From: Macrostomum hystrix
Taxonomy: Eukaryota > Animalia > Platyhelminthes
Length of the DNA: 64,000 bases
Assembly: GCA_950097015.1 (NCBI GenBank)
Contig: CATNEN010000014.1
Span: 806,001-870,000, forward strand
Direction of reading: 5' to 3'
Shown: one piece after another, positions 14,287 through 64,000 of the stretch
How the letters are laid out: every line of letters starts with the position of its first letter
Numbering within the stretch: position 1 is the stretch's first letter
The notes under the pieces: generated by a model
Told to the model about the DNA's origin: nothing
The model's input: the letters and a program-made list of their open reading frames with translations, nothing else
Database searches by the model: none
Translations under genes and position numbers: made by a program

Positions 14287-14684
14287 TCATCCCCTAGAAC
14301 GCCACGACAACCGGCCTCGCCGCCACAGTCGCAGTCCTCGCCGTCTTCCAGAAGGCCGTTGCCGCAGACCGCTGTTGGCCAATCCGCGGCTACGTGCAGG
14401 CGAAGAAGCCCGCCCGGATAGTCAGCCTCTGGTCTCGGCCACAGCAGGCAGTGACGGACGCCGGAATCCAGGAAGTTCTTCAGGGCTTTCTTTGAGCAGT
14501 CCGACCAGCCGATGTTGTGCCACTTGCTGCGATTCAGCGTTTTGGGGTGCATCATGCAGGCCTCATTGGAGTCGTGACACCAGCAGTGGTCTAGGTAACT
14601 GGTATCGTAGTCGACGCCAAGGTTGTATGCCAGGTTCCGTGTCATCATCACCCCGGTGGTGTCGAAGTCGCTGGACGAATGAGA
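14287..14684 (-). CDS. ADAM A exon: reprolysin C-terminus with degenerate zinc motif, Met-turn and disintegrin start
   Basis: MTRNLAYNLGVDYD in place of xAHExGHxxGxxHD; CMMHP; CGNGLLEDGEDCDCG. Confidence 0.9.
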
Positions 14685-14769
14685 CTGGCGTGGGCAGTCG
14701 GAGATATTCGTAATATATAAAAAATTTTTATGTGAACCCAGATTTGGGAGCCTGCGGAACAAAGATTGG

Positions 14770-14950
14770 AGAGACTGGGAACAGATATTAGGGAGACTGG
14801 AAACAGAGATTAGGGAGACTCGGGAACAGAGATTAGGGAGACTCGGGAACAGAGATTAGGGAGACTGGAAACAGAAATTAGGGAGACTGGGAACAGAGAT
14901 TAGGGAGACTGGGAACACAGATTAGGGAGACTGGGAACCGAGAGTAGGGA
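14770..14950. repeat. 22-bp intronic minisatellite (gggagactgggaacagagatta); also ~34025-34135 and ~63350-63660
   Basis: Direct tandem units. Confidence 0.85.
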
Positions 14951-15088
14951 GGCTGGTGTGATAGATTTTGGGGAGGCTGTGGGATAAAGATTTGGGAGAC
15001 TGGAGATCGAGCGAAAAATTGAAAGAGAGTCTTCTCCTAACTCATTCTAATATAGGGATTAGTGGAAGCTAATTTGCTAGTTACTTAC

Positions 15089-15170
15089 GACACTAAAACC
15101 GACGCACTTTTTCCACATGCACATTCTATTCTTAGTGGCGTTGCCTGTCAGGCTGGGTCGATTTGTGGCT
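15089..15170 (-). CDS. ADAM A hypervariable exon 1
   Basis: ttcag|a GCC...GTC|gtaagt; ATNRPSLTGNATKNRMCMWKKCVGFSV, aligning to the reprolysin G-x-A-x4-MC segment. Confidence 0.8.
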
Positions 15171-15204
15171 CTGAAATTTGATTTGATAAAGTATAGTCGA
15201 TAAG

Positions 15205-15400
15205 AGAGTCTGGTAGACTGGAGTGTTTTGGATAAGAGAGTCTGGTAGACTGGAGTGTTTTGGATAACAGAGTCTGGTAGACTGGAGTGTTTTGGATAAG
15301 AGAGTCTGGTCGACTGTTTTGGATAAGAGAGTCTGGTAGACTGGAGTGTTTTGGACAAGAGAGTCTGGTCGACTGGAGTGTTTTGGATAAGAGAGTCTGG
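15205..15400. repeat. 32-bp intronic minisatellite (gagagtctggtagactggagtgttttggataa); also ~34520-34750
   Basis: Direct tandem units without spacers. Confidence 0.85.
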
Positions 15401-15512
15401 TATACATTAAACCATTGTCAATAAGATAGGAGTCTTTTGTAGAAGCCAATGTGCTATCGGCTGTAGTCTTGCACATAGACAGTGAGCACTCAAGGCTATC
15501 CAATCAGCTCAC

Positions 15513-15629
15513 GTAAGCACGTGCACACAGTCGTGGTCCTCGCCCCCAAAAATATGCTTAGAACTGTCCAAGGTATCCAGCGTTTTGTCCAAATCCCAAT
15601 TGAAGATGTCGAGATAGCTGTCATTAGTG
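15513..15629 (-). CDS. ADAM A hypervariable exon 2
   Basis: cttag|...|gtgag; TNDSYLDIFNWDLDKTLDTLDSSKHIFGGEDHDCVHVL, phase-compatible with the next exon. Confidence 0.75.
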
Positions 15630-15975
15630 CTAAGAATTTCCAGCGCGCTGACTACTACGTAGATGTCGAAGCGGCGAAAAAACTGCAGAAATATCGAAAA
15701 TATGCCTCTTATACTGCTTTCAGTACAGTGCGAAAAACAAACTGCAGCTTTATATATCCATAATATTTTATTTAGAATTTTTTAAGAGTGTAAAAATATA
15801 AACTGTATCATCTGTTAGACATGGGTATCGCATGTTAGACATGGGTATCACCCTCACCCTCATGAGTTTCACCTGTTAGACCTGTTAGACATGGGTGTCA
15901 CCCACAGATAATATATAACATCTATATATATAAAAGTGAAAACTCTGTCTGTGTGTGTGCAACCTTTTGTCTTTA

Positions 15976-18386
15976 TCTATATATATAAAAGTGAAAACTC
16001 TGTCTGTGTGTGTGTGTGCAACCTTTTGTCTTTATAGACGCCGAAACCGCTCAACCAAATCGCACCAAACTTTGCACATACCTAAAACCACCTACGCTGA
16101 GTGCAATAGGCTACTCAAATTCCCGAAAAATCATTTCCTTCCTGCTCAAAAGTGCAAATAACTGCTCAAAAATCGTCAAAAAATCACTCAATTCGACATA
16201 TCGTCGCCCCACTTTGTCAGATTTTCTCCAAATTTGATCCACTTACACTTTACATGTTTTCCAACAATGCTGTCAATTTTGAACATCTCTACTCAATCCA
16301 GAGCAAAGCTGCATCATCTCAAAGTGAGTCACTTTTTGTTTTCCGAGGACAGCCACCCCAACTCCCCTCCGCCACTCTGCGGGCCAAATTTTATTACAGC
16401 CACCCCCTCCCTTCCCCGGGCGCCGAAGCCCCAGACTGTACATTGTATTTCAAGCCGTGAATGTACACAGCCCAAACCCCTAGACTGTCTACTGGCCCCC
16501 AAGCAGCACTGAGACTGAGTGCGGTGAGTGCGGTGGCGTCCCAGTGCGCAGGGCTCTCTGGTCAATATTTCTCTCCAGCCAGCCTGGGATAGAAGAAAGA
16601 GAGAGGCTGGCGTACAGTGCTTTGCTAAAATACAAGACGGTTATCCGCTGTATCGACGGAGATCACGTGAGGATGGCGGCTTTACTACTCGCATTATTCT
16701 ATGCAGCCATGGGAATGAAGAGATCGATCTGGACAACAGATGGGTCGTTCCCTACTGCCCGCTACTGTCCAAGGTGTTCAATCCACACATCAACGTTGAG
16801 TACTGCAACTCTGTTAAATCAATCAAGTACATTTGCAAGTACGTGAACAAGGGTAGCGACCAAGCAGTGTTCAACATTGAGGGACCTGGAGGCATAGTAA
16901 ACGAATTTGACGAAGTCAATCGCTTCAAGAGCGGAAGGTATCAGCTCTAACGAGGCAATGTGGCGAATCTTCGGATTCTCTATTCATGAACGCCACCCAA
17001 CTGTCATGCACCTCAGTGTGCACCTGGAAAACGGTCAGAGAGTATACTTTACGGAGGAGAACATCCAGCAGCGTGCTCAAAGGCCACAGGACACTACTCT
17101 TACTGCTTTCTTCAAGTTGTGCGCTGAAGACCCCTTTGCCAGGACTTTGCTGTACCACCAGGTGCCTGCCTATTACACATGGAACGCCTCTTCGAAAGGA
17201 TGGAAGCGGCGGGTTCAAGGCGCTGCAGTTCCAGGCCATCCTGAAATACGACAGACTGATGCATTAGCCAGAGTACACGGTGCACCCAAACCACAGTGAA
17301 TGCTACTACCTGCTACACACCGTGATTGGTCCGACGTCATTTAGACACATTAGAACGGTGGAAGGCCATACCTGCCAAACTTTTCATGAAGCATGTCAGC
17401 GACTGGGACTGCTGGAAGAGCTGGATGACCAGGAGCAGCTGGGACAGTTCATAGAGGAGAATGAGCCCCGACTCATGCCTGAGCAGCTAGAGGCGTACCG
17501 CGAGCTATTGCGCAGAGTCAACAACAACGTTGGTGGCATGGTTTTTCTTGATGCTCCAGGTGGCACAGGAAAAAAATTTCTAATCAACCTCTTTCTGGCA
17601 AAGGTCAGGCAACGAGGCGACGTTGCCATTGCTGTAGCTTCCTCTGGAATTACAGCCACCTTGCTGCCAGGCGGTCGCACTGCCCACTCAGCACTGAAGT
17701 TGCCGCTTGATCTGTCTTGAGCGGAGAATCCGCTGTGCAACATCAAGAAAAACACAGGCACTGCCAGAGTGCTTCAGGCTTGCAAGCTTATCGTCTGGGA
17801 TGAGTGTACCATGTCCCACAAACTGGCATTTGAAGCACTCAACTTAACTTTGAAAGACCTGCGCAATAGCAATCAACTGATGGGTGGTGTCACTCTGCTG
17901 CTGTCTGGAGACTTTAGACAGACGCTGCCTGTGATTCCGCGAGGCACTCCTGCTGATGAGATTAATGCTTTCCTAAAATCATCTCACCTGTGGCCATCGG
18001 TTGTGAAGTTGCACCTACGAACAAACATGAGAGCTACAATTCAAGGAGACGAAACAGCTCATGAGTTCTCTGCCAATCTATTGCGAATCGGCAATGGTCT
18101 GCTGGAGATTAGCACAGAGAATGGGCAGTCATCGATCGCTACAATCGGAACCATTGTGCAGTCAGTGCAGGAGCTCAAGGCAAAAGTTTACCCGAACCTG
18201 ATGGTTCGATATACTGACGTTGACTGGCTGTCAGAGCCAGTACGCCCTTAAACAAACTCTTCACTTTTCATTCATGCAGTAAATAAATAAATGGTGACCT
18301 TCACTATAAAGTTAATACAGAGACGTGAATTGCTTACTGCTTTGCTTTAAATTTCTGCCCCAAAAACAACGGGCAAAAAAAGCTAG
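15976..18386 (+). mobile_element. Helitron derivative H2 (5' end + Rep motif 3 to mid-helicase + 3' end), preceded by a 55-bp 5' stub at 15921
   Basis: TC start, CTAG end; same 5' ~650 bp as H1 and H3. Confidence 0.9.
16633..18236 (+). pseudogene. Helitron RepHel middle part: Rep Y2 motif and Pif1-like helicase motifs
   Basis: DGYPLYRRR, KYICKYVNKGSD, SSNEAMWRIF, FLDAPGGTGK, LIVWDE, GDFRQTLPV; frameshifts near 16940 and 17275, stop at 17720. Confidence 0.9.
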
Positions 18387-19040
18387 TCTATATATATAAA
18401 AGTGAAAACTCTGTCTGCCTGTCTGTGTGTGTGTGTGTGTGTGTGTGCAACCTTTTGTCTTTATAGACGCCGAAACCGCTCAACCAAATCGCACCAAACT
18501 TTGCACATACCTAAAACCACCTACGCTGAGTGCAATAGGCTACTCAAATTCCCGAAAAATCATTTCCTTCCTGCTCAAAAGTGCAAATAACTGCTCAAAA
18601 ATCGTCAAAATATCACTCAATTCGACATATCGTCGCCCCACTTTGTCAGATTTTCTCCAAATTTGATCCACTTACACTTTACATGTTTTCCAACAATGCT
18701 GTCAATTTTGAACATCTCTACTCAATCCAGAGCAAAGCTGCATCATCTCAAAGTGAGTCACTTTTTGTTTTCCGAGGACAGCCACCCCAACTCCCCTCCG
18801 CCACTCTGCGGGCCAAATTTTATTACAGCCACCCCCTCCCTTCCCCGGGCGCCGAAGCCCCAGACTGTACATTGTATTTCAAGCCGTGAATGTACACAGC
18901 CCAAACCCCTAGACTGTCTACTGGCCCCCAAGCAGCACTGAGACTGAGTGCGGTGAGTGCGGTGGCGTCCCAGTGCGCAGGGCTCTCCGGTCGATATTTC
19001 TCTCCAGCCAGCCTGGGATAGAAGAAAGAGAGAGGCTGGC

Positions 19041-19658
19041 GTTGACTGGCTGTCAGAGAGGGCAATTCTGCGTCCTAGAAATGATGCCGCCAACGAAATT
19101 AACTACCAACTGCTTCAGGAGTTGCCAGGTGCAGTTTTCACCTACAAGTCAATTGATACAACGTTGACTGATGACACCGCTGTGGAGTATCCTGTTGAGT
19201 TTCTGAACTCTCTAGATCCTCCTGGAACTCCATCGCACAACTTGCAGCTGAAAGTTGGGGCACCAATTATGCTCCTCCGCAACCTGAATGCGCCAAGGCT
19301 GTGTAACGGCACCAGACTGATAGTCAGGCGGCTCTTCCCACACGTGATTGAGGCCACGATAATGACTGGATCTGGCAGAGGAGAGTCTGTGTTCGTTCCC
19401 CGGATTCCAATTATCCCCACGGACCTGCCATTTCAGTTCAAGCGACTGCAGTTCCCTGTGAGAGTGTGCTTTGCGATGACTATTAACAAGGCTCAGGGAC
19501 AGTCGCTGAAGGTGGCTGGCATCAACCTGGAGACTCCTTGCTTCTCGCATGGGCAGCTTTATGTCGCCTGCTCCCGTGTTGGAACTCCAGCTGGCCTATT
19601 CATTTTCGCACCAAGGGGAAGAACGAAGAATGTGGTGTATCCCCAGGCCTTGAGGTGA
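19041..19658 (+). CDS. Helitron Pif1-like helicase C-terminal fragment
   Basis: AILRPRN, LKVGAPIMLLRNL, RLQFPVRVCFAMTINKAQGQSL, FSHGQLYVACSRV. Confidence 0.9.
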   Translation, partial: VDWLSERAILRPRNDAANEINYQLLQELPGAVFTYKSIDTTLTDDTAVEYPVEFLNSLDPPGTPSHNLQLKVGAPIMLLRNLNAPRLCNGTRLIVRRLFPHVIEATIMTGSGRGESVFVPRIPIIPTDLPFQFKRLQFPVRVCFAMTINKAQGQSLKVAGINLETPCFSHGQLYVACSRVGTPAGLFIFAPRGRTKNVVYPQALR

Positions 19659-19810
19659 CTCGCAAGCAATTAATAGAAAAGTAGTCACGAATTGACCTTG
19701 ACCTGTCTAACTCTGAACTCTGAAACAGTTTAATTTTGTTTCTTTGACATTGTTATTGTTATGCCATGGCTATTTTCCTTATGTATACGCGTGTACATGC
19801 ATACTGTATA

Positions 19811-20071
19811 CAGAGGCAGATTTAGGGGGGGGGGTGGGCGGGGGGCAGTCGCCCCCCCCCAAAATTTTAATCATGGGAATAAGATGCCCCCACCAGGGGC
19901 GCCAGTCGCAGCACTGGCGCCCCTTTTCGGCCGCTGGCGCCCCTTTTTCAGCCGCTGGCTCCCGTTTTTCAGCCGCTGGCGCCCTTTTTCGGCCGCTGGC
20001 ACCCCCTCTGTGATTCTCATGGCGCTCCCCTGACAGACCGCCCCAAAACAAAATTCCTGGATCTGCCACTG
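19811..20071. mobile_element. hAT-type MITE in the Helitron 3' region
   Basis: TIRs cagaggcagatttagg / cctggatctgccactg; 8-bp TSD ACTGTATA (19803-19810, 20072-20079). Confidence 0.85.
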
Positions 20072-20236
20072 ACTGTATAGAGGAGTGGCTAATAGACATG
20101 TTTCTAAAGAAGTAATCAAGAGGGGGCTGTTTGGACAAACTTTTCACTTATTTTTTACTTAAAACGCCCTTAAACAAACTCTTCACTTTTCATTAATGCA
20201 GTAAATAAATAAATGGTGACCTTCACTATAAAGTTA

Positions 20237-20928
20237 TGTGGTGCCGGTGTCTCTGGCCTTGTGGTTTTGTTAGGCCTTCCTCACCCAACGCCGTCTTGGC
20301 TGCCCGGTGCCCGGTGCCGCCATCTGATTGGCTGGGCGCGGGCCTTGTGTGCCTATCCTACCCCAGCCCTGCGTGGCTTTGCCCTCACGCCAATCAGCTC
20401 TGCGTAGCTTTGCCCGTCCACCCGTCCAGCGCGTACAACCCAACCCCCCCAGCGCGCTGTAGGCTTTGTTTGTGCTCCGCCCATGTCTGCCCCCTTGTCA
20501 GCCCTTAAGGTATCGTTTTCTGCCCGGGCCAAGGCTACCTCTCTCCCCCCTTGCGAACTTTAAAAGATCGTGCCGTAAAGACGGTCTCTTACTGCGAAGG
20601 CTCAATTTATTGCATAGCGAAGTGATTATTGAATAGTGATTCCGAGTGCATGGTTTATTAAAGTGCAAAAATTGCCGACAAATACATTCAGCGTCATCCT
20701 GCCATCCTATCGTGCGTCCCGACCGGTAAGCACTGTATTTGTGTCTGTCCTTTCGGGGTGCCAGGTCCGCACGGAGTACTGTAATAATCTTAGAAGTACT
20801 GTGTGAGCGTCCTAACGCCACCAGTCCCTGACTGCAACAGAGCGTCCTAACGCCTGGTTCAGTGATCGATAATATTTTACTTAATAGGGCTGTCGGCCGG
20901 GGATCTCAAACCGACCACTGTCACTACA
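20237..20928. mobile_element. Solo LTR (Gypsy-like), 692 bp
   Basis: TGTGGTG...CACTACA termini; 4-bp TSD GTTA; interrupts the Helitron 3' sequence aagttaatacagag seen intact at ~7100 and ~18310. Confidence 0.8.
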
Positions 20929-21034
20929 GTTAATACAGAGACGTGAATTGCTTACTGCTTTGCTTTAAATTTCTGCCCCAAAAACAACGGGCAAAAAAAG
21001 CTAGTATAATATATAAGTTATATATTATCTGTGG

Positions 21035-21270
21035 TGTCACCTGTTAGACATGGGTATCACATGTTAATGACCCTCACCCTCATGGTTTTCACCTGTTAGA
21101 CCTGTTAGACTTGGGTATCACCTGTTAGACATGGGTATCACCTGTTAGACGTGGGTATCACCTGTTAGACATGGGTATCAGCTGTTAGACATGGGTGTCA
21201 CATGTTGGACATGGGTGTCACATGTTAGACATGGGAATCACCTGTAAGACATGTGAATCACCTGTTAGAT
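21035..21270. repeat. 20-bp intronic minisatellite (cacctgttagacatgggtat); also ~15810-15902 and ~35200-35610
   Basis: Direct tandem units. Confidence 0.9.
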
Positions 21271-21607
21271 ACTATACTCACGTTGTTGACGATTCCAATA
21301 ATGCTCTGTACCGCATCAATCACAACCGATGAGCTCATGGAGTGCATATTGTACTGCAATGAGAAGTGAGCAGCTGGACTATTACTCTAGTAAAGTTATT
21401 TTTTGGACCTAAAAAAGGGCACGTCTTTTAACATCGGAAACGCTAATCGTTGCTAAGGCCCTCTAGTATCCATGGTTACCCCAATGGCAAACAAATTATC
21501 TCTTAATTTGCATAACATCTCGCACAGCATTAGAATCTCGAGCAACGAGCAAGCAAAACAGTTTGCAATATTAAAAACTGTCTTGACCACTTTACTTCGA
21601 TTGCCTC

Positions 21608-21745
21608 GCCTAATGTCTATGGTACACCCACATGACCTGGCCTAATGTCTATGGTACACCCACATGACCTGGCCTAATGTCTATGGTACACCCACATGAC
21701 CTGGCCTAATGTCTATGGTACACCCACATGACCCGGCCTAATGTC
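21608..21745. repeat. 32-bp intronic minisatellite (gcctaatgtctatggtacacccacatgacctg); also ~35950-36150
   Basis: About 4 units in A and 6 in B. Confidence 0.9.
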
Positions 21746-22814
21746 AATGCTTCTCCCTCAAGTCTTTCCAAAGCTAGTCGCTACTGTTATTATATGCTAT
21801 ATTAACATCAAATTATAAATGTTACACTCACAAACCAATAATCAGCGATGATGTAGAGCTGCATAATGAATGGGCCGCCACTACTGATCACCTTCCTGCT
21901 CAGCTTTATAAACCGGGTCTCGGACTTTGCTAAGCGCCGGTGCCTCTGTATTTGAGTTTGGATCGAGCAAGCAAAGGCGAGTAGAATTAACGGAATTGAT
22001 TCAGTCAGTCTGTCTGTGTTAGCTTGATCAGTCCATGGACTGGGTGCCGTCACACTCACTCAAATTTCTATCCGAGCTAATGCTGCTAATGCTGCTAATG
22101 CGGTTAGGAGTCCGAAACTCTGCGCCAAAACCTCATGAGCATACGCTTTCAATGTTGGGTCACCAAGAAGCATAGAATTTGCAAAGCTAAGCCTCATCTA
22201 TATAACTCTTGATTTTTAACTGGCTAACATGATCAAGCTGAACAGCAACTTGACACTTGAATGGCACCAGTCATAAATACTTTTGCTATTCTGCCCCATT
22301 CTATCTGTTGGTCAGCTTTATCAACAATGGGAACAGCCATCCATCTGACATTATCCTTAATCCTTGGGATATAGAATAGTGACTCATAGAATAATTAGTC
22401 ACTTTCAAAATTGGGCTCTTGAACTTTATTAATCCAAATAATGGCTTACCTGTAATAAAACGCTGCCACCAAGCATTTTGGTCAGTTGCTGTGGACTTAC
22501 TGGAAGTTATGGTGAAACCCATCTACTTATTCATTGAGCATCTCAATATATTTCTAAAGTGATGTGAATGAAAGCAAAAATCATACTCACGTGCAGCAAT
22601 CCGCTTATTCAGCACATCATAGGCCGATTCCAATGCTTGACGCTGCTTCCAACCGACACTTGAAGGATACAAGTTGAGCTGGTACACCTGCCAGCTTGAG
22701 TCACGCAGCCGCATGCGATGCCCGGTGGCTTGAATATAGCCCAGGTGAGTGATGTTGATTGACAGCGTGCCACTGTCAATGAGGGTTTGATTCAGCTGCC
22801 CGGGTAAATGATCT

Positions 22815-24330
22815 GCATGGCTGTCTGTTCTGGGCTGTCTGTTCTGGGGTGTCTGATCTGGGGTGTCTGTTCTGGGGTGTCTGTTCTGGGCTGTCTGTTC
22901 TGGGCTGTCTGTTCTGGGGTGTCTGATCTGGGGTGTCTGTTCTGGGGTGTCTGTTCTGGGCTGTCTGTTCTGGGCTGTCTGTTCTGGGCTGTCTGTACTG
23001 GGCTGTCTGTTCTGGGCTGTCTGTTCTGGGGTGTCTGTTCTGGGGTGTCTGTTCTGGGCTGTCTGTTCTGGGCTGTCTGTTCTGGGGTGTCTGTTCTGGG
23101 CTGTCTGTTCTGGGCTGTCTGTACTGGGCTGTCTGTTCTGGGGTGTCTGTTCTGGGGTGTCTGTTCTGGGGTGTCTGTTCTGGGCTGTCTGTTCTGGGCT
23201 GTCTGTTCTGGGGTGTCTGTTCTGGGCTGTCTGTTCTGGGCTGTCTGTTCTGGGCTGTCTGTTCTGGGGTGTCTGTTCTGGGCTGTCTGTTCTGGGCTGT
23301 CTGTACTGGGCTGTCTGTTCTGGGCTGTCTGTTCTGGGCTGTCTGTTCTGGGGTGTCTGTTCTGGGCTGTCTGTTCTGGGATGTCTGTTCTGGGGTGTCT
23401 GTTCTGGGCTGTCTGTTCTGGGCTGTATGTTCTGGGGTGTCTGTTCTGGGGTGTCTGTTCTGGGGTGTCTGATCTGGGCGGTCTGTTCTGGGGTGTCTGT
23501 TCTGGGGTGTCTGTTCTGGGGTGTCTGTTCTTGGCGTCTGTTCTGGGCTGTCTGTTCTGGGCTGTCTGTTCTAGAGTGTCTGTTCTGTGGTGTCTGCTCT
23601 GAAGTGTCTGTTCTGGGGTGTCTTTTCTGGACTGTCTGTTCTGAACTGTCTGTTCTGGGCTGTCTGTTCTGGGCTGTCTGTTCTGGGCTGTATGTTCTGG
23701 GCTGTCTGTTCTGGGCTGTCTGGGCTGTCTGTTCTGGGCTGTCTGTTCTGGGCTGTCTGTTCTGGGCTGTCTTTTCTGGGGTGTCTGTTTTGGGGTGTTT
23801 GTTCTAGGGTGTCTGTTCTGTGGTGTCTGCTCTAAAGTGTCTGTTCTGGACTGACAGTTTTAGGCTGTCTGTTCTGGTATGTCTTTTCTGACGTGTCAGT
23901 TTTGGGGTGTCTGATTTGGGTTGTGTATTTCTGGGGTGTCTGATCTGGGTGTCTTCTGAGGTGTCTGTTCTCGGGAGTCAGTTTTGCATGGCTTTCTGTT
24001 CTGGGCTGCCTGTTCTGGGCTGTCTGTTCTGGGGTGTCTGTTCTGGGGTGTCTGTTCTAGGGTGTCTGTTCTGTGGTGTCTGTTCTGTGGTGTCTGTTCT
24101 GAGGTGTGTATATCTGGGGTGTCTTTTCTGGGATGTCTGTTCTGGGCGTCTGTTCTGGGCTGTCCGTTCTAGGCTGTCTTCTGGGGCGTCTGCTCTGGGG
24201 TGCCTGCTCTAAGGCGTCTGCTCTGGGATGTCTAAACTGCATGGCTGTCTATTCTGGGCTGTCTTCTGGGTGCCTGATCTGGGGTGTCTGATCTGCATAT
24301 CTGTATGTTCTTGAGTGTCTGTTCTGGGTG
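22815..24330. repeat. 14-bp minisatellite (tgtctgttctgggc), ~100 units in A and 4 in B
   Basis: Direct tandem units; compare 37249-37305. Confidence 0.95.
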
Positions 24331-24769
24331 TCCATTCTCACCGCAGCAGGTCAGAGCAGAGTGACACAAGGCCTGGCTGAGTCACATTGCCCAACTGGGC
24401 AGTCCCAGACTCAATCGGCCACGCTGAGTAGTGGCACTGAGAGCGATGTCGCGATTTGGTGGCCTGGGATCGACTCCCCACGATTCGAACTGGGAACTCT
24501 TCAGGTCTGGAAAAGTATTTAACAAAGAGCTGCTACAAAGGGGATTGCAGCAATGGGTCGTATTCGAGCTTCATCAAAAAGTATAAAAGTGCATTTGTGC
24601 TTACCTTCTCACCGCCAGGTAGAATGAGAACCGGCGCAGCGATGGCATAGCAACAATCTCTAAGACCAAATTTCTGCCGATTTTCTGAAGCGGTAAAATC
24701 GAACTCACAATTTTGAAAACATTGAAACAATTTCAAGCCTCCGGTGTGTACCAGCTGGAACAGCCTTCT

Positions 24770-25245
24770 GTCGACAGGGGCAACCTTCTACTGATAGGGC
24801 AACCTTCCACGAACAGGGCTATCCACTGACAGGGCTACCTTCCACTGACAGGGCTACCTTCCACTGACAGGGCTACCTCCCACTGACAGGGCAACCTCCC
24901 ACTGACAGGGCAACCTCCCACTGACAGGGCTACCTTCGACAGACAGGGCTAACTTCCACTGACAGGGCTAACTTCCACTGACAGGGCAACCTTCCACTGA
25001 CAGGGCAACCTTCCACTGAAAGGGCAACCTTTCACTGACAGGGCAACCTCCCACTGACAGGGCTACCTCCCACTGACAGGGCTAACTTCCACTGACAGGG
25101 CAACCTTCCACTGACAGGGCAACCTTCCACTGAAAGGGCAACCTTTCACTGACAGGGCAACCTCCCACTGACAGGGCAACCTCCCACTGACAGGGCAACC
25201 TCCCACTGACAGGGCAACCTCCCACTGACAGGGCAACCTTCCAAT
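24770..25245. repeat. 20-bp minisatellite (ccactgacagggcaaccttc) upstream of ADAM; also ~37630-38035
   Basis: Direct tandem units. Confidence 0.9.
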
Positions 25246-26064
25246 GAGGCTCAACCACTCAAATCAACAAAGATTCATATGTAGGCTTCACCTTCTAGCC
25301 TTTTGTTGGTGCAAGATTTTAACGCAATGAGGTTAGTAACAGTACGAGTGGTGGCATTTGATGGCACAGAACATATGCATCTGTTCCAATTTGCTCATCG
25401 TTAACGATTGTGCACACTCGCTTTAATTTTAGCCCAACAATACTAAATCTCTAAAATGTTTTCTTGCTAAAAAGGTTTAGTTCAATCATTTCAGATTTTG
25501 CTTACCCGGCTTGGCTGAACTTCCTGACCATCGTTGGCCTGAAATGTTCTCATCTTGGCCAGCAAGGTTAATGGCCTGGTTGAGTCCGCTGAAATTGCAG
25601 TTGAGAAGGCTAGAAATTCAGTGGCAATCATTGCTTTTGTAGCTTTCCAGCTTGTATTTTGTAAAATATGCTCGCTAATTACTTTTGAATTGTGTTGTCA
25701 TTTCAAATAATGCATTTAAAACTGAGCACACTCAAAATAGTTAAAAGGATTGTGAGTACTCACCAATTGCGCAGTTGGAACACAGCAGGATGATAAATTT
25801 AGCTATTAATGTGATACAAAGAAGGCTATGGAGTTCACTGGCATGACTTATTGGCATGTTTACACAAAAAGTTGTAGCGATTCAACCAGTGGAATAGTCA
25901 ATCGTCAATGTATATAAAATTCCTGCAATTTGAAACCCGATGTATATAGTTTCAGGATTGGAAAGGCTCATAGACTAAAACAGCGGGCACGGAAAGTCGA
26001 TTTGTGCCCGCTGCCGGGGGATTTCGTCTATGTCCAAAGCAACGGAAATATTGCTGCAAAGCCA

Positions 26065-28577: not shown

Positions 28578-28611
28578 TTTATTTAAACAATTTTAACGAA
28601 TTTCTGAATCA

Positions 28612-47031: not shown

Positions 47032-47036
47032 CCAGC

Positions 47037-50024: not shown

Positions 50025-51361
50025 AAACTGCGGCCATTCTTGCGGGAGGGGGAAAACTGTAGTGTTTGCTTCGAACTCTTTGTGTGCGATCCGAACCCTT
50101 GTCTGCCCGTACCCAGAGTACAGTACGCTATCTTTCTCTCCCCACCCCCAAACAGGCGGAGGCATGTTGGGAAGTCTCCCCTCCCGGGAGCAAGGTAAAT
50201 ATAGTGGCCGCATGGCTGCGGTGAATCACGGCAAGCGAAGCTTAGCCACTACGAGGCTTCTCACGGACACACACTGTTCAGCTTTCTTATTTGGAGTCCG
50301 ACTCCACACTGGTCACCTAAGAAATAGTTTGAGCAAATATTAGAGTCTCTTCCAATAAAGAGATACGCAACAGAATTAGGGACATGCTTTTTGGTTTCAG
50401 GCGTCATAGTGCTTTCGAAGTCGGCGTACACTATAAACGGGAGCTTCTCCATCTTGTGACAACTCTTAAATCTGAGATGCTTATTATCACCTCTTGGAAG
50501 TGAGCAGTTGGTTGGATGATCTTCACAGGTCATGCACTCTAAGTTTTTCATCACGATCGGGTCCACTATTGTGCTTCAGACAAAGACGGCAGATTGCTAC
50601 CGGTTCACGATGATTGTTCATTTGCTTGTGGAGGAGCATGGAAAGATCTTTGATCCAAACATACTGGGCATTTTCTTGGGAGCTTTGGCGGGAGGTCAAT
50701 ATATGATGAGGCTTTGAGAGGGTCATATTTCATTATCATTACTGTAGCTTTTCTAATTCCTGCAACAACCCAACCTGATCCTCTGGATGTAAAGGCGTCA
50801 GTATTTTTACTGATCCTTCAAGAAATGGATCCTGTGTGTCAGTGGGAGTAAAGGGTAGCGCTTTAGTAGTCATGTAGTATTGAAGACGCTTCGTAGGTTT
50901 TTTGGGCATGTCAAATTCAATCTTGAATGATAACTGAAGGGTGAAGGTCTTACGTGACTTCAGTGTGTGATCAGTAACTGATTGGATTGTCTTTGAAGTC
51001 GTAAATGTCTGTAAGGGAATCTGTAGTGGGTTGGGAATTTTCGGGGTTGTGATTTCTCCAGTATTGTAGTAGTAAATGTATATAGCTGGCTCTGTGTTGT
51101 GGATTGCGAACTCAATATAATGCTCTGTAATTTTTCTTTGTGCAAATGTCTTCAGTTTGTAGTTCTGACTCCGCCTTGGTGGATTGTACGTTCTAGATTT
51201 TCCTGTTCCTGCTTGTTTTGGGGATATTTACAAGTCTGACCTGTGAGAGTCTGATATCTGTTGACTAAGCTGCGGCTCTTTTGTTGGTGTTCAGTCGCCG
51301 GCTTCTTCACCGGTGTGTACTGCTCTGAAGACTGAAGCTGTTTAATAATTTCTTGCTGCAT

Positions 51362-54300
51362 TGCATAGCTCCCGAGCTAGCATGGATCTGTATTTAATTG
51401 CTGCTTACAGAGCTCTTGCAGAACTTTACTTCTATAGTCACGAGACGGCGGTGCAACTGGCTACAGAAACTATCGATCGAGCGCATAGCAGCTACCCAGT
51501 TCGAGATGCCAATTACATCCGTAGCAAAATAGACTACCGCATCAGCACCAACGGCAATGTTGACAGAAGTCGTGCTAGCCGCTATCGAATCAGCAACGAG
51601 TACGACTACAACAAAAGAGACCGCAAAAACTTTATAAGTGGCTATCGCGCCAATATCGAGCCCAGCAACTACCGCAGAAGTAGCTTTGCGTACCGCAACG
51701 GATACCAACAAGTTGGTGTCAGGCGCATCGATGACCGCCAGTTTCGTTGCGTCGATTAAGACCGCCTGCCCAAGCCTGTGCGGCAACAACTTCAATCGCC
51801 GGTGGGGTGGAGGAGTCATTTAGCTGCTCAGCTCGAGTCCTCTAACCCCTTTGCCTAATAACTTTCTATTTTTGATACCGTCAATCCCATACCGCGCAAC
51901 AGGTTTTGAAGGTTTTGAACCCGTCGTGACTGGCTCTAAGGACTACTACTCCCTCTTTCAATGTTAACTTCTACGCTAAATTTTAACTCCCGAATAGTCT
52001 CTGAAACACAGGGCAGCTGCGAAAAGAAGGTTGCTTATAATAAGTCAGAGTTGATTATCACCAGTTGGAACATAGATGGACTGATGATCAGTGGAGAATG
52101 CAAAATGGAGTCACCAAGTTTCCACGAACATATTAGGAATAGAGACATAGTTTTCCTCTGTGAGACCCACGCCAAACAGGAGCAGCTAGACTCAAACACG
52201 CTGATAGATTTCACCTGCTTTGGAGCAGATGGAATCAAGGCAAGGGGAGTCAACAAAGGTAGGTTATCAAACGGCATGGTTTACCTCGTAAAAAATAATA
52301 TTGCAAAGAGAACCACATTAGTGCACAAATCTGACTTCGCTCTGGTACTAAAAATAAAGCAAAAGCAGTCTGAAGAACCCCTGTATATCTTAGGGTGCTA
52401 TATCCCACCGGAAAATTATAAATACTACAAGGAAGATATATGGGAGGAGATTAAATATCTCATCCAGCTCTTCTCAAGAGAGGGCTCCGTATTAACAGTA
52501 GGTGATTTCAATGCACGAACTGGCACATTACAGTCCAGCACTAGGGATAAGTTTCCCAGACAGAATCAGGACTCTGAGAAAAACAAGCATGGACTAAGAC
52601 TGATGGAAATGTGCTCCGAGACCAAGAGCACGATTCTGAACGGAATGACTCAGGGTGACATTATGGGAAATTACACTTTTAGTAGCACACTAGGCCGAAG
52701 TACCATAGACTACGCTATTGCATCCATGGATAAAGTAGATACTATAAAAGACTTCTTTATTCATCCTCAAAGCTTTCTGTCCAGACATTGCCCGCTAACA
52801 GTCACTCTGATTTTTCCTGATCATGTCCAACCCGAACACGCAAACCAGGAAAAACATGAATCCTTCCCAATGCCTCCAAGATGGGACACTGAAACGCAGG
52901 GAAGTTACATTGAGGCATTGAATAACAAACAAAGCGAAGAAATAATTAGAAAGTTGCAATCTATTGACGCACACGATGGAAAATCCCTGGAAAATTTGTT
53001 CTCGAGCTTGACCAACCTGCTTAGAGACTCAGCGGCAGAAAGCTGCGCAAAGACAATCATTCCGAATTAGTTCTGGACAAATCGAGATGAGACCCTAAGA
53101 AACTTGAGCAAATCATTAAAGTACGTGGCCAGGAAAAAAAGACGTAGACCAACTGACAGTGCGCTGGCATGAGAATATAATGGGCTAGCAAAAACATACA
53201 AACAACAGCTCAAGAAACTTAAGCAGATGGACATAAATGACTGCATTCAGAAAATGGCGGCTAACGGAACCTCAAAGGGATTCTGGTCCGGTCTTAGAAG
53301 AGCAGAAGATTTGCTGTTCCCCAGCAGGAGACTTAACAGATCTCAAGCCCCAATCGCTGACATCGCGAACAACCTAACCAAAGTATTTAACGCACATCCT
53401 TCTTCGGGAACCCAGCCGCATCGCACAGATGAAGCGGTTAGTCCCGAAGATTTAATTAGCTGTGTAGATCTCGACAGAGCAGTTAAAAAGCAAAAGAGAA
53501 GAAAGGCTGCAGGAATAGATGGTATAACAAATGAGCACATTATCTACGGACAAGAGAAGCTAAAACCCGTACCTCTGAAGCTTTTTAACGCAAGCGTAAG
53601 ACTCGGCCAGACTCCTGCACAGTGGTCAAATGCCCTAATCACACCGATTTATAAAAAGGGATCCCGTAGTGACCCCAAAAACTACAGACCCATAAGCGTG
53701 CTGCCTGCCCTGGCTCGCCTGTTTGCCTCACTTATCTATGAAAAGCTAGAAACTCATATTCGCACCCTCGACTTGCTTTCAGCCAGTCAAATAGGAAATA
53801 GAAAGGGCTACCGAACTTCAGACCACATTGCCACTCTCTTGTCGTTGATCCACAACAAAAAGCGTCGCAAAAGACCATTTCACTTAGTATTCTTTGACTT
53901 AAAAAACGCATTTGACATGGTCCACCATCCAACACTTTTCCAACGATCGACTTAGGGAGTTAAAGGTCAGCCCAGAAATAATCGAAGCAATACAAAACAC
54001 GTACTCAGGAGCTAAATTTCAACTGAAGATCTCAGATGGCCAAGCAACTAAGGCAAGGAGCATAACAAATGGAGTAAGACAAGGCTGTCCCCTATCCCCT
54101 CTACTCTTCTCACTCTATATAGATCCTTTGAGCACAATGCTAAGGGATTCATTAGCAGCGACACCTTCATTAAAGATGAACAAATCAACAACTTGCTATA
54201 CTGCGATGATCTAGTGATCTTTGGAGAGAATCCTCGAGAGCTGCAGAAGGGCCTCGATAAAGTGTCAGAATTTAGTCAGAGCCACAAGCTAGAAATCAAT

Positions 54301-55610
54301 ATGCAAAAAACTAAGGTTATTAGCTGTTGCCCTGACCCATCAAAGACGGCTAACAAACTATTTCTGCAGGGACAACTGTTAGATGGCGTCAAAGAATGGA
54401 AATATCTTGGCTTTCACATCAATGCTAAAGGAACCGTGGATTCCCATGCCACAGAGATTAACAAAAAATGTGGATACCCTATTCTTCTCTTAAGGAAATT
54501 AGATAGCCATGGGGCGGTCAGATACAATCAGCTCATGCTGTACTGCACAGCAATGATAGAAAGCATAGCTCTGTACGCCTCCGAGGCCTGGGGGGCTTTT
54601 GTCTCGTGGAACCTGGGTCCTTGGGACCGCTGTCTTGTGGAAAGGGTAAACATCAGGTGCTGTAAAGCCATACTACAAGTCAGCCAAAATACGGATGGCA
54701 ACGGGGCCCGCTCGGAGTTAGGCAGATTGCCTTTATTATACAACATCCAGAAAAGAAGCATTTCGTACTGGGCCTCCATAACAAGCCGGCCGGACTCCAT
54801 AATTTTCAAGTTATTGGCGGACCCAACATACAGTGATGTTGGAATCAAAACAAAGACCAACAATGACGTTATGCTGAACTGCAGAGGCATTAGTCCCGCA
54901 AAAGCAATTAAAAACCACAGGAAAAAATTCGTTTCTCAGTTTGATACCCATTGGAGACAAAGGACACAGAACTCAAGCAAGCTAAGACACTTCTATTACT
55001 CCTTCAAGCAATAATATTCAGCCGAAAAATATTTAAAGCAAATATACAACCCGGAGTTGAGACGTACCATATCCTCGTTTAGACTAGGAAACCATAAGCT
55101 AGCTTGCGAAACATTGCGAACTGCAAGACCGAAAATTCCGTATGAGAACAGATTATGTAGTAAGTGCAAAACAGAAGTTAAAAACGAGGTCCACTTCCTT
55201 TTTAAGTGCACTTGGAATAAGTATAGCGCAGCACGTTCGAATTTTGAGAAGGAAATTTCTGGGAAAACTCCCAATTCCATATCCTTAACAGCAGAAGAGA
55301 AATCTAACTACATTTGGCTCAAGACGATAGGGAAACCGCTGAAGCTTTAGCAAAATACATCATAGATATCTCTAAAATAAGGGAACAGCTGCCCTGAGAC
55401 TACAAGCTCGTATTAACATTTAACAATATATATATTGTTTTATTCGTGGCGTCCCTTGTGTTTTTACTGCTCTTATTTTTAATACCTTTGCTTGTGCTTT
55501 TCCCTTCCCAGCTCGATAGTGTAATCCAACAAAACTTCGCTTTTTATGTTGTTTTTCGTCGTCCATTGAAATATTTGTCAACAATAATTATTTAGAAAAA
55601 AAGATTTGAC
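51362..55610 (+). mobile_element. Degenerate LINE (APE endonuclease + RT; CR1/L2/RTEX-like)
   Basis: SWNIDGL, LCETH, GDFNAR, STIDY; KNYRPIS, FDLKNAFD, GVRQGCPLSP, YCDD; C-terminal RLCSKC...EVHFLFKC; several stops and frameshifts. Confidence 0.9.
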
Positions 55611-60085: not shown

Positions 60086-60928
60086 AGAGCATTATCGAGT
60101 AGAGTCGCGTTGTTGTTCTTGTGTTGAGGTTATCGAGATTTTGTTAAGTGGGTTACCAGTGCGAATTGTGAATTGAATATTGAATTGAATCAAGTACAGT
60201 ACCTGGCAGGGGAATTAATCGTTCATTGCTTTCTCTTGTTAACTAATTAACACTTAAATATCAGCTGTTTAGCTTGGGCTTTTGAATCGTCTTGTCTTCG
60301 TTATTTTCGAGTTACGGCAATAGAGTCTCTCGCAAAGAGTAGGACACCCGACCTCATTTAGGAATCTCAACGCAAAGAGAGACCTAAGTCAAAATATCAG
60401 AAGCGCATACAATCTTAGCCTGAGCCGAGGCCGGACAACGTAATTTTGCGTCACATTGAAAGCTTCCATAGAAACTGAAAAAATTCCATCAAATGCCAGT
60501 TTTCATTCGAATATTTTATATTTGTACAAAAGAAAGTCTTTGTTGTACTATATTTTTCAAAGTTTTGAGCATATTGCCGTGTTGTTGTTCACTACAACCG
60601 AGCGAACATTTCTATTCAACGTCCTTTGTCCTACAAAACATTACAATTGCGACGAAAAGAAATTTCAAACGGAGAAAGAAAATACTTTGAAATGTTTACA
60701 TTTCTACCGAGCAGAAAGTAGCATAAAATACCTACAACTAAAGTTTACTTGAGTGGGTCTCGTGATGTTTAAATAAAACAGAGAAATAATTGAGTCGTTT
60801 GTCATGCGTTTAAGTCATTCGAGAGGCGTTTTAGTCTGGAGAGAGGCATTTTAGTACTTCGAGAGGCATTTGAGTCATTGCATTGTTTGCAAAATTTAAA
60901 GGCTGCATTTTCAAACTAAGGCTGTGAC

Positions 60929-63900
60929 CTAGTAGACGGTGACTGCGGCGGCTGCCAAGCTGGCCAGGCTTACCAGGATGGCGGCGGAAACTCCGCCAGT
61001 TCTCTGGCCGTCACTAAACGGTCCGGGCGGACCGCTGTCGATGCTGCCACCGTTGCCGGCCAACTGGCAGTCGGGCGGGGCGAATCCTGGCGGACAGTGG
61101 CAGTGGCCGCGCGAGTTCACGGTGCCACCGTTTTGGCAGGTGACATTGCCAGCCACAGCGGCTCGGTTACGAATCTCCGAGGCGGATTGGCAAGTTCTGT
61201 TGAAGCACATTTGCTCGCCGTTACGGTTTCCGCAACGCGCACCGTCTGGCACTCGATCGGGCGGCCCGGGTACCCGCGGATGGTAGCCGCAAATGGCAAT
61301 GCCGCAAGTTTCTGGACCTGTCCCGGTTATATCCGGAATGCAGTTCTCCAAATTCTCAATCGGGTGCACAAAGGTGCCGCACGTTACCATATCACATTCC
61401 TTGCTTTTTTTCGGGCACCAGGAACTCTGCAAGCAGTGGAGAAGTGTGATGTGTTACTAAAAAGTGAACTAGACAGCGAATCGGAATCGCTCAGGAAGAG
61501 ACACAATAAATAGTGAGGTGAGCTTGACGGCTGACTTAAAAGGCAGTCAATATCGTTTTGCAGGAAAATAAGCAATTCAATCAAAGTGAATAAAAAGGGT
61601 TAGTAGTTTTAAGAGCTTCCGAGAATGAGGGAATTCCTCTGACTCACGGCATCCCGTGCCGTCGGTCCCCAGAGTAACTGACACTGAGTCTGGGCGGAGC
61701 CGCACAGACCGTTGGCGCAGAAGTTGCTGCCGCACGGTGTCCCGTCTCTGGCAGCGAAATCGGCAGGGCAGGTTGAGTCGACGCCGTTACAGAATTCCGG
61801 CAGGTCGCATTGTCCTTTGGCGGCGCGGCAAACGGTGCCAGTCGGGCGCGGCTGACAGACCGTCAAGTCGCAGCAGCGCCCTGCGGCGCAGGCAGCGGAT
61901 TCGGCCAGCTTGCAGGAGGTGGCGTTGCAACAGTCGTTGCCTCTGTGAAACGATTGGTCAGCAGATAACTAACGACTTGTTTGCTACCTCTGACACAAAG
62001 CTCGAGACTTTGGATCTTGTTAGTTACGAAATAGATGAAAGAGTTGTAGAAAAAAGAATCGATATTGCACGAAATTCACTTGGCACCGCCGAAGCTATTG
62101 CGCAGCGCTTCCAAATCATGTGTACAGCTGTTCAGTCCGTGGACTGAGTGCTTCCACTCCTACCGAAATTTCCACGCCAGCAGATGCTGCTAGTCAATTT
62201 ACAGCTGGGTGAAATGACGCAATGAGGGAATTGATTTAAGCGTCTGGCTCAGAGACACAGGTTATTTTCTTCGGGCTGCGATTCGAACTCCCGAACTACT
62301 CACACGGAGTTGCCTTTCAATGTGCAGCAGTCACTTTTTGTAGGCACTCGTTTTTTAAAACACACACGACACGCAAAACTCCTAAAATAGCTCGTAGGAA
62401 GAATTGGCAGAGCACAAAATGAACAATTGCAAGAGGGCTGCGGGCAATGGCACATCATTTGGCGACACCAGACCTGCAGCCAGCGAGGAGACAATTCGGC
62501 CCATTTCGCTGACTCCTGAGCACACCTACTCACACAGGTGTGTACATCTGCAATCAATTTCTCATCATCAGGCAGTGTACACTGTCACTGTGCCTTGGAG
62601 GTTGGCCCCCAAAGGCGCAAATTGCACTACAAGCCCCAAGCCTAATCTCCGCGGCTGCGGCCCAAATGAATGAGGCCTCACCATGGAATCGAGCTCAGGG
62701 AGCTTGGTGCGAGAGGCAAGCGCTTTAGACCGCTCTGCCACTCACTCACCCCGCAAGTGGGATTCTACAACGTAATTAATAGGTGAAAGTAATTCTAACC
62801 TGAGTTGTTCGGCAGCCAAGTGAAAAGTGAAGAATCCCAAGATTGGGTCAGATTCAAGAAGTCAAATCCCAGTTGACTGAGTACCCTGACCTACTCATCC
62901 CCTAGAACGCCACGACAACCGGCCTCGCCGCCGCAGTCGCAGTCCTCGCCGTCTTCCAGAAGGCCGTTGCCGCAGACCGCTGTTGGCCAATCCCAGGCTA
63001 CTGGCAGGCGAAGCCCGCCCGGATAGTCAGCCTCTGGTCTCGGCCACAGCAGGCAGTGACGGACGCCGGAATCCAGGAAGTTCTTCAGGGCTTTCTTTGA
63101 GCATTCCGACCAGCCGATGTTGTGCCACTTGGTGCGATTCAGCGTTTTGGTGTCCATCATGCAGGCCTCATTGGAGTCGTGACACCAGCAGTGGTGGTCT
63201 TGGTATTTGTTATCGTAGTCGACGCCAAGGTTGTATGCCAGGTTCCGTGTCATTATCACCCCGGTGGTGTCGAAGTCGCTGGACGAATGAGACTGGCGTG
63301 GGCAGTCGGAGATATTCGTAATATATTCAATAATTTTATGTGAACCCAGTTTTGGGAGACTGAAAAACCAAGATTAGGGAGGCTGGGGAACCAGGATTTA
63401 GGAGCCTGCGGAATAGAGATTAGAGAGACTGGGAACAGAGATTAGGGAGACTCAGGAACAGAGATTAGGAAGACTGGGAACAGAGATTAGGGAGACTGGG
63501 AACAGAGATTAGGGAGACTGGGAACAGAGATTATGGAGGCTAGGAACAGAGATTAGGGAGACTGGGAACAGAGATTAGGGAGGCTGGGAACAGAGATTAG
63601 GGAGACTGGGAACAGAGAGAAGGGAAACTGCGGAACAGAGATTAGGGAGACTGCGGAACCCAGTATAGGGAGGCTGGTGGGATAGATTTTGGGGAGGCTG
63701 TGGGATAAAGAATTGGGAGACTGGAGATCCAGCGAGGAATTGAAAGAGAGGGTACTGGTCTCCTAATGCATTCTAATATAGGGATCAGTGTCCTCTGCTC
63801 GAAGCCAGTTTGCTAGTTACTTACGACGCTAAAACCAAAGCAATCTTGAATGTTGCACATGCTTTTATTATAGGCTGCGCCTGTCATGTCGTCGAAATTT

Positions 63901-64000
63901 CTGGCTCTGAAGTTTGAGTTGATGAAGGTTTTTCTATAATTTCTGGCTCTGAAGTTTGAGTTGATGAAGGTTTTTCTATAATTTCTGGCTCTGAAGTTTG
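60929..64000 (-). CDS. ADAM-family (non-catalytic) gene copy C, 3' exons (5' part outside the window)
   Basis: Exons 60929-61426, ~61648-61942, putative microexon 62750-62764, ~62895-63292, 63825-63906. Confidence 0.8.

Follow-up and report, generated by a model that had tools for sequence, protein, structure and literature searches.

Several ADAM proteins of vertebrates are known to be inactive as proteases. ADAM2, 7, 11, 18, 22, 23, 29 and 32 have the domain order of the family and have lost the zinc site; their roles are in adhesion and reception. ADAM22 is an inactive member with a solved ectodomain, which comprises metalloproteinase, disintegrin, cysteine-rich (Cys-rich) and EGF modules (PMC4848645). 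Reproductive ADAMs show duplication and positive selection, as reported in the same paper, which cites Glassey and Civetta 2004 (PMC4848645). Dead ADAMs working as adhesion or receptor proteins, reproductive ADAMs which evolve fast and fast-evolving tandem families are all known already. Here we describe a 64-kb stretch of the genome of Macrostomum hystrix (contig CATNEN010000014.1, positions 806,001 to 870,000), which we will call the window. Its minus strand has three direct copies (A, B and C) of one ADAM-like gene, as found by self-comparison, and the three genes are part of a tandem array, as an earlier reading of the sequence alone (the sequence-only reading) had claimed. We consider it probable that they represent a lineage-specific tandem subfamily of dead ADAMs with a diversified binding surface, which is the best overall explanation of the data. 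A tandem family of dead proteases with sharply bounded hypervariable patches, together with homogenised introns and other domains, has no precedent in the literature that we searched.

The closest relative of these genes is found in Macrostomum lignano. A HMMER scan with the exon of the zinc site (exon 11) against 1.84 billion representatives gave three matches below 1e-10; the best one is the M. lignano ADAM Mlig005741 (PAA73542.1, P0001). It has 44% overall identity with the window genes, 53% in the zinc exon and 61% in the disintegrin. The borders of exons E7, E8, E10, E11 and E12 coincide (E9 was not recovered in the mapping), the Cys positions align and the basic site RKKR ahead of its mature domain has the same position as the furin-type site RHRR of the window proteins. 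PAA73542.1 is an ADAM of the meltrin type (ADAM12/19/33-like). With its residues 225–600 as a query only ADAM12/33/15-type proteins were found, with at most 38% identity over the full region; this protein search gave neither a closer flatworm relative nor a product of the window. A protein homologue search with exon 11 of copy B (131 aa) had no match, which carries little weight for a query so short in relation to the length window of the search. Literature searches on Macrostomum disintegrins or metalloproteases and on the M. lignano gene name did not turn up any paper on Macrostomum ADAMs or anything else of relevance; entries for ADAM or Mlig005741 are also absent from the supplements of the M. 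cliftonense / M. hystrix genome paper.

PAA73542.1 differs from the window genes in several features. Its zinc motif HELAHNLGSGHD is intact and of the catalytic type, whereas the window genes are dead. It has a full Cys-rich domain, with one more Cys-rich exon (aa 610–723). It also has a transmembrane helix and a cytoplasmic tail of ~150 aa, which the window proteins lack. Finally, the M. lignano copies show no variation in the protease domain, and a search of 10 kb to each side of its gene revealed no other ADAM gene. Since PAA73542.1 is a conventional ADAM, the window family is a derived branch, which has lost catalysis, part of the Cys-rich region and the tail, and has been amplified in tandem. 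Its origin would be a canonical catalytic meltrin-like ADAM, from which a dead lineage-specific subfamily arose in a Macrostomum-type flatworm. M. lignano also has a second family of short ADAM-like proteins of 522–537 aa (P0075–P0080; Mlig019806 and Mlig026616); members of the two types share contigs. Their zinc motif is intact; the C-terminus is hydrophobic and a cytoplasmic tail is missing, as in the window genes. The differences among them are spread evenly and are not patchy.

The loss of the zinc site is complete in the three copies. None of them has the consensus HExxHxxGxxHD with its catalytic Glu. A six-frame search places the dead motif RNLAYNLGVDYD of copy A, aligned to HELAHNLGSGHD, at 14604..14639 of the minus strand, and its equivalents, on the same strand, at 33865–33900 in copy B and 63212–63247 in copy C. 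The shared part NLAYNLGVDYD (14604–14636, 33865–33897 and 63212–63244) is preceded by R in A and C and by Q in B. When the site is aligned to PAA73542.1 it reads R/Q-N-L-A-Y-N-L-G-V-D-Y-D: the three His and the Glu have been replaced, and the Gly and the last Asp are all that is left of the consensus. As the zinc ligands and the Glu are replaced, we classify the window proteins as non-catalytic ADAMs; they are predicted to be unable to cleave peptide bonds. The Met-turn is kept, with C-M-M (C-x-M) after a variable loop. The eight Cys of the protease-like domain are retained in A and B and align with the Cys of PAA73542.1. The sequence-only reading had described precisely this combination of lost ligands with a preserved Met-turn and Cys, and the alignment bears it out; all the peptides which it quoted lie on the minus strand where it had placed them, with no match on the plus strand. 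The R version of the motif is also present in an RNA contig of organism label A (33899 T>C). Because the motif is the same in the three copies, except for R/Q, and its R version is found in RNA, the substituted helix is conserved rather than decaying.

In most of their length the copies are very similar. The proteins of A and B have 99% identity in the prodomain and 96% from the disintegrin to the C-terminus; in the protease-like domain identity is 72%, with 18 gap columns. The A/B differences lie in five stretches of this domain, V0–V4, which we have placed on the secondary structure by alignment to the AlphaFold model of the homologue PAA73542.1. All of them are given here in minus-strand genes. 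V0 corresponds to the first ~20 mature residues after RHRR, in exon 7 (A 21877..21933, B ~36284–36364), with in-frame indels of 18 and 6 nt. V1 is a smaller variable stretch, found by sequence comparison, which includes a loop and the start of helix A in exon 8 (A 21353–21282, B 35697–35626). The largest patch is V2, in the middle of exon 9 (A 15543..15628, 86 nt; B 34913–35019, 107 nt); it covers helix B and the loops on either side, which connect it to strand 2 and strand 3. V3 is exon 10 (A 15089..15170, B 34299–34386, C 63825–63906), with a loop, strand 4, the loop to strand 5 and two conserved Cys. V4 is the loop that leads from the position of the former third zinc ligand (HD) to the Met-turn (A 14574..14603, B 33835–33864, C 63179–63211). 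The sequence-only reading had noticed exon 10 and the loop after the motif; the variability extends further, to the beginning of the mature domain in exon 7, a part of exon 8 and the central portion of exon 9.

The boundaries of the patches are sharp and fall inside exons, and all indels in the patches keep the frame. V2 has a mismatch fraction of 0.57, to be compared with 0.55 ± 0.06 for shuffled sequence. In the same exon there are five differences in the initial 54 nt and five in the terminal 30 nt, and the flanking introns differ in 4 of 82 positions just after the exon and 2 of 60 just before it (3–5%). Exon 10 has a nucleotide difference of 30–34% among copies. N-glycosylation sequons are gained and lost within patches: exon 10 has NAT in A, NKS in C and none in B. 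The introns give much lower values. In clean columns of A and B, introns 1, 2, 3, 5, 6, 7 and 12 differ by 0.4–5.4% (0.4–4.4% when intron 2 is set aside), and intron 11 differs by 1.0–1.7% (A–C and B–C); the A–B value of intron 11 (0.188) is an alignment artefact of a 611-nt deletion in B and was not used. The minisatellite-rich introns 9 and 10, which adjoin the variable exons, reach 6–11% in clean columns. Thus the near identity of introns and of disintegrin and EGF exons that had been proposed is correct for the constant domains and most introns, and too strong for introns 9 and 10.

Counts of nucleotide changes on a star tree of A, B and C show where replacement is in excess. In the protease part of exon 11 we find 21.5 nonsynonymous and 0.5 synonymous changes, a rate ratio of ~12 (binomial p=0.004). 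The stretch from the zinc site through the loop to the Met-turn, which holds V4, has 14 nonsynonymous changes and no synonymous one (ratio infinite, p=0.047). The disintegrin has four of each, with a ratio of 0.31 and no excess. Exon 13 has 13 and 2 (ratio ~2, not significant). Synonymous change in exon 11 is ~0.007 per site, the level of the neighbouring introns, so the excess of this exon lies in amino-acid replacements. Its nonsynonymous divergence (dN) is 0.06–0.12, above its synonymous divergence (dS) and above the clean intron difference of 0.004–0.05. The claim that the variable patches outpace the introns, mostly by replacement, is therefore upheld by exon 11 and by the nucleotide difference of exon 10. 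Pairwise dN is 0.40–0.54 and dS 0.11–0.50 in exons 9 and 10; the segments of both exons look like old or exchanged cassettes rather than the result of simple selection on point mutations.

The relationship among copies changes along the gene. At variable sites the groupings AB, AC and BC are about equally frequent and they are clustered in runs. Exon 11 has 8 runs where 14.4 are expected (p=0.0016); exon 10 gives p=0.018, a value inflated by changes within single codons. In the V4 loop the first half of copy C is equal to B and its second half to A. Since no single tree fits, the copies are mosaics of short blocks, as expected under short-tract gene conversion. This mosaic, which shows that conversion is active, is also what one would expect from concerted evolution combined with relaxed constraint. 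The dead domain would then be a functionless spacer, conversion would homogenise the array where copies are alike and stall at patches which had drifted apart, and the patchwork would be a by-product of this rather than diversity under selection. The damage found in copy B agrees with such a process, and so does the combination of high dS and a dN/dS of ~1 in exons 9 and 10. However, the nonsynonymous rate of exon 11, some twelvefold the synonymous one, is also several-fold above the 1–2% of introns 11 and 12, and relaxation cannot exceed the neutral rate; simple relaxed constraint is ruled out for this exon because its replacement rate is above neutral. A spacer under no constraint would explain neither why all indels are in frame, why the eight Cys and the core elements persist and why the dead motif does not vary, nor why patches end sharply within exons. 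We consider this explanation doubtful as an account of the whole locus.

The position of the patches bears on their possible use. In metzincins the walls of the substrate cleft include strand 4 and the segment that precedes the Met-turn. According to the model alignment only V3 and V4 would border the former cleft. V2, V0 (at the N-terminal end of the mature protein) and V1 (where helix A begins) presumably lie on other faces, as judged by the adamalysin topology. The diversified surface is probably larger than the cleft, and the idea that the dead cleft serves as the variable surface fits V3 and V4, not the other three. A different role may be envisaged, namely a regulatory pseudo-enzyme, which would serve as decoy or substrate trap, or pair with active ADAMs or with their substrates or inhibitors; its loops would follow rapid changes in endogenous partners, and not in ligands that are foreign or come from gametes. 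The location of V2, the largest patch, which we place off the cleft, speaks against it. Many diversifying tandem paralogs would also be unusual for a housekeeping regulator. It is true that the fold and the elements that line the cleft are kept while the catalytic residues are lost, that a catalytic relative exists in M. lignano and that dead ADAM receptors such as ADAM22 are known (PMC4848645). On balance a regulatory role of this kind seems unlikely to us.

The exon structure rests on RNA for copy B. Logan contigs from four runs were aligned to positions 32900–38899 of the window; two of the runs have organism label C (with introns matched without mismatch), one has label A and one label B. 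The parts skipped by the contigs begin with CT and end with AC when read on the plus strand, as do GT..AG introns of a minus-strand gene. Joints are found at 33248/33551, 33945/34299, 34386/34883, 35073/35626, 35697/36239, 36926/37018, 37370/37469, 37548/38298 and 38380/38556; one more joint, 36328/36877, stems from a divergent paralog. They fix exon 10 of copy B to the base (34299–34386), as well as exon 11 (33551–33945). A spliced contig of 194 nt in run X5 joins 132 nt of E9 of copy B, including its B-specific middle, to 62 nt of E10 with no mismatch, and exon 10 has joints on either side in runs X5 and X6. Word depth is 70–130 in conserved exons in two runs, as against 2–4 in unique intron pieces; therefore the gene is expressed and the runs are RNA libraries. 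Copy B-type genes are transcribed and spliced at the predicted borders, a further point in which the sequence-only reading was right. None of the three contrary outcomes which it had listed (dN/dS of 1 or less, divergence at the level of introns, no spliced transcripts) is what we found.

The 13 exons of copy B (32235..38649, minus strand), given by RNA contig joints, are E1 38649–38556, E2 38380–38298, E3 37548–37469, E4 37370–37305 (truncated), E5 37199–37018, E6 36926–36877, E7 36376–36239, E8 35697–35626, E9 35073–34883, E10 34386–34299, E11 33945–33551, E12 33248–32954 and E13 32732–32235; the predicted stop and 3' end lie outside the stretch covered by RNA. Copy A has its full coding region at 12360..25857 (minus strand), also with 13 exons, whose splice sites were transferred from the RNA-supported copy B: E1 25857–25764, E2 25588–25506, E3 24684–24605, E4 24506–24342, E5 22772–22591, E6 22499–22450, E7 21945–21832, E8 21353–21282, E9 15682–15513, E10 15170–15089, E11 14684–14287, E12 13373–13079 and E13 12857–12360 (stop included). 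All its exon borders have canonical AG/GT, and the spliced open reading frame (ORF) has 760 aa and no internal stop. Copy C is represented by its 3' portion (60929..64000, minus strand), the remainder lying past the window end; edge mapping and translation give E10 63906–63825, E11 63292–62895, E12 61942–61648 and E13 61426–60929. As repeat units the copies extend, by self-comparison, over ~11990–26050 (A), ~32170–38840 (B) and from ~60860 to the window end (C).

More genes of this type are expressed. The RNA contigs show at least two further variants of the exon 7/exon 8 stretches, and other variants of exon 9 and of the start of the Cys-rich part; from these additional exon variants we conclude that the expressed family is larger than the three copies of the window. 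RNA under two other organism labels holds the conserved exons with at least 95% identity. In exon 10 a Gly is replaced by Arg in an RNA variant at 34355. We also considered whether the variable exons could be mutually exclusive alternative exons, and rejected it: exons 9 and 10 are single in every copy, and RNA joints flank them. An artefact of assembly or polishing was rejected as well, given that the patches of copy B are matched exactly by RNA contigs. That the array is no more than a decaying set of transcribed pseudogenes with no protein function is very unlikely, for in spite of the truncated exon 4 of copy B, the mobile elements inserted inside and between copies and a variable exon of copy A which was not found in RNA runs, the frame is intact over the 13 exons of A and from E5 to the stop in B, the disintegrin is under purifying selection, splicing is accurate at high exon depth and the same exons are found in RNA of the two other labels.

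Some details of the transcripts may be added. Ahead of the main start there is a short upstream ORF of 29 codons, which starts with MSLSNPETIY, in the transcribed exon 1 (25858–26038 in copy A, and the same in B). Directly upstream of exon 10 of copy C a 42-bp unit which contains the splice acceptor is repeated 2.5 times (63896–64000), so that several acceptors are possible. One RNA contig, of organism label B, extends 4 nt beyond the donor of exon 12 and then continues in exon 13 (32950–32954), which would shift the frame; it could be an alternative donor, another paralog or a quirk of assembly.

The ORF of copy A has, in this order, a signal-peptide-like start, a prodomain of ~190 aa, the RHRR site, the protease-like domain, the disintegrin, a short Cys-rich part and an EGF-like module. 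It ends in a hydrophobic stretch of ~19 aa, preceded by small or polar residues, which runs into the stop codon. Exon 11 matches Reprolysin (PF01421) in A, B and C, with E-values of 1.5e-11 to 2.6e-10 over profile positions 123–197, and exon 9 matches it weakly. These matches, together with a full-length alignment with PAA73542.1, whose AlphaFold model has the expected strands and helices, point to a reprolysin-type fold. The disintegrin is clear (PF00200, E 1.1e-15, 58.5 bits with a cut-off of 35.1). The Cys-rich domain is incomplete: PF08516 is matched in positions 1–36 of 115 with 27.3 bits, below the cut-off of 29.4, and the exon equivalent to aa 610–723 of PAA73542.1 is absent, since intron 12 has just 221 nt and the RNA joins E12 straight to E13. 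EGF_2 is matched weakly (20.8 bits, cut-off 22.1), and the same stretch aligns well with the EGF-like region of PAA73542.1. There is no transmembrane helix followed by a cytoplasmic tail: the ORF stops after the hydrophobic stretch, and the tail exon of PAA73542.1 (aa 916–1031) has no counterpart. Among known structures in the PDB, the sequence matches are with snake venom P-III metalloproteinases, ADAM17 and ADAM22; those with VAP1, the RVV-X heavy chain and catrocollastatin have E-values of 2e-5 to 4e-4.

From these features we may outline how the system could work. The signal peptide would lead the protein into the secretory pathway, the prodomain would probably be cut at RHRR and the hydrophobic, tail-less end would anchor the protein at the cell surface in a GPI-like or tail-less manner. 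Catalysis would have been lost with the reprolysin fold retained: the Met-turn, the eight Cys and the strands and helices of the core are still there. Most of the gene, introns included, would be kept nearly identical by gene conversion or unequal exchange between neighbours, while four or five short segments, presumably at the surface of the dead protease domain, are held different. In the zinc exon this would be due to classical positive selection; in exons 9 and 10 the segments would be deeply diverged and cassette-like, shuffled in short blocks. The minisatellites of the introns may have a part in the exchange between copies. In such a protein the pseudo-protease domain would be a variable scaffold for ligand binding, and the disintegrin and EGF modules a constant stalk.

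A number of observations weigh against this explanation. There are only three copies, one of them partial, which leaves few changes to count on the star tree and makes the pairwise comparisons interdependent. If conversion homogenises the introns, this alone may make exons seem older than introns. In exons 9 and 10 pairwise dN/dS is 0.8–4.8 with high dS (0.1–0.5); because dS is so high, as in old, exchanged or saturated stretches, dN/dS alone is uninformative there, and selection is inferred from the contrast with introns. Exon 4 of copy B (37305..37370) is broken: a deletion fuses the middle of the exon to the minisatellite of intron 4, with loss of 99 nt of the 3' part of the exon and of the splice donor, as compared with 24342–24506 in A. 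The frame would survive skipping of exon 4, and the ORF of B is intact from E5 to the stop. All RNA contigs at the site of exon 4 carry a full A-like exon 4, with loose ends at 37200 and 37305. A joint 37200/37305 in run X1 was considered as a B-specific splice and rejected: its ends are not GT..AG and the length of the contig fits a full A-like exon 4 (98 + 20 nt). The A-specific exon 9 was sought in the sequencing runs and appeared in DNA runs only. The prodomain has no match in Pfam when its exons are compared singly; its tblastn similarity to the prodomain of PAA73542.1 is weak (E ~1e-2 to 5e-4). The C-terminus is most likely a glycosylphosphatidylinositol (GPI)-type signal, as judged from the sequence; it is favoured because there are no cytoplasmic residues and small or polar residues lie upstream.

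Even so, a dead-ADAM subfamily with a diversified binding surface remains our preferred explanation, and binding by the patches would be its most likely function. The observation made in the sequence-only reading is confirmed, and its interpretation as a diversifying recognition protein is partly supported. Our first guess for the ligand is a molecule of reproduction or of the mating partner, these worms being hermaphrodites with strong sexual conflict; our second is one that comes from a pathogen. Macrostomum is a model for sexual conflict, with hypodermic and reciprocal insemination; genes of reproduction with rapid evolution are looked for in this genus, and few candidate molecules for surface recognition are known in it. 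If partner- or pathogen-derived ligands are bound, the family would offer concrete, testable candidates and show plainly that the fold of a pseudo-enzyme can be turned into a variable binding scaffold. It is conceivable, on more tentative grounds, that the array is a germline repertoire of surface receptors, in which the dead metalloprotease fold is the recognition scaffold and variants are produced by short-tract conversion, possibly aided by minisatellites, and selected through recognition of mate, sperm or egg, or of pathogens.

The rest of the window is rich in repeats. Six introns (2, 4, 7, 8, 9 and 10) each have their own minisatellite, with units of 14, 19, 20, 22 and 32 bp. In copy A, Tandem Repeats Finder locates them at 24773–25247 (intron 2), 22819..24295 (intron 4, a 14-bp unit repeated 106 times over 1.5 kb), 21604–21749 (intron 7), 21100–21269 (intron 8), 15199–15402 (intron 9) and 14740–14956 (intron 10). 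They have counterparts in copies B and C, with unit counts which vary between gene copies. Intron 8 of copy A also has an insertion of ~5 kb formed by repeat elements (15895..21041), where self-comparison shows that homology between A and B is broken; its repeats are also present at 6821–10036. The space between copies B and C is occupied by retroelements (42684..55014, plus strand), recognised with Pfam: two sets of long terminal repeat (LTR)-type pol ORFs with protease, reverse transcriptase, RNase H and integrase at 42684–50024, and ORFs for endonuclease and reverse transcriptase of the long interspersed element (LINE) type at 51961–55014. The LTR-type pol ORFs are GC-rich (~60%). A 12-bp satellite, CAGATTCATCAA, is found directly 3' of every gene copy, at 12095–12246, 27927–28204 and 55723–58656; its length varies widely, with ~13, 23 and 244 units behind copies A, B and C, respectively. 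Finally, a G-rich satellite of 3 kb is found at 3272–6331, with ~180 copies of the 17-bp unit GGACAGCAGGGAGGGTG and a strong GC and AT skew.

We may now compare this locus with other known systems. In vertebrate ADAMs the selected sites have been reported mostly from the adhesion domains (disintegrin and Cys-rich); in the window genes, in contrast, the disintegrin is conserved and it is the dead protease domain that varies. The window proteins also differ from the inactive vertebrate ADAMs in that they have no cytoplasmic tail and no orthology with them, the nearest named relatives of PAA73542.1 being of the ADAM12/33/15 types. The sea urchin EBR1 is an ADAMTS-like egg receptor for sperm bindin, of the M12B family, which is involved in species-specific gamete recognition (PMC13672419). 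It keeps the zinc signature, and binding has been assigned to its CUB/TSP1 repeats rather than to the protease domain (PMC13672419). EBR1 is a single gene with another architecture, unlike the window genes.

Snake venom metalloproteinases share the reprolysin fold with the window proteins. Venom genes, such as these and the crotaline phospholipases A2 (PLA2), show accelerated evolution in tandem arrays, with exons which diverge faster than introns. Venom enzymes are catalytic and are secreted as toxins, whereas the window proteins are dead and predicted to be tethered to the membrane; nothing suggests a venom role. The pattern of the major histocompatibility complex (MHC), as in exon 2 of HLA-DRB1, is that of young, homogenised introns around variable exon segments which are old or selected. 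The window genes resemble it in their nearly identical introns and constant exons, in the shuffling of variable segments as short motifs and in the excess of replacements. They differ from it in that diversity is found between tandem paralogs, in an unrelated fold and organism, and they are not known to bind peptides. The locus offers a natural case, small in size, of concerted evolution and diversifying selection acting next to each other in the same exon. If it were a receptor repertoire, it would be a flatworm counterpart of the MHC-like or gamete-recognition families, built from an ADAM.

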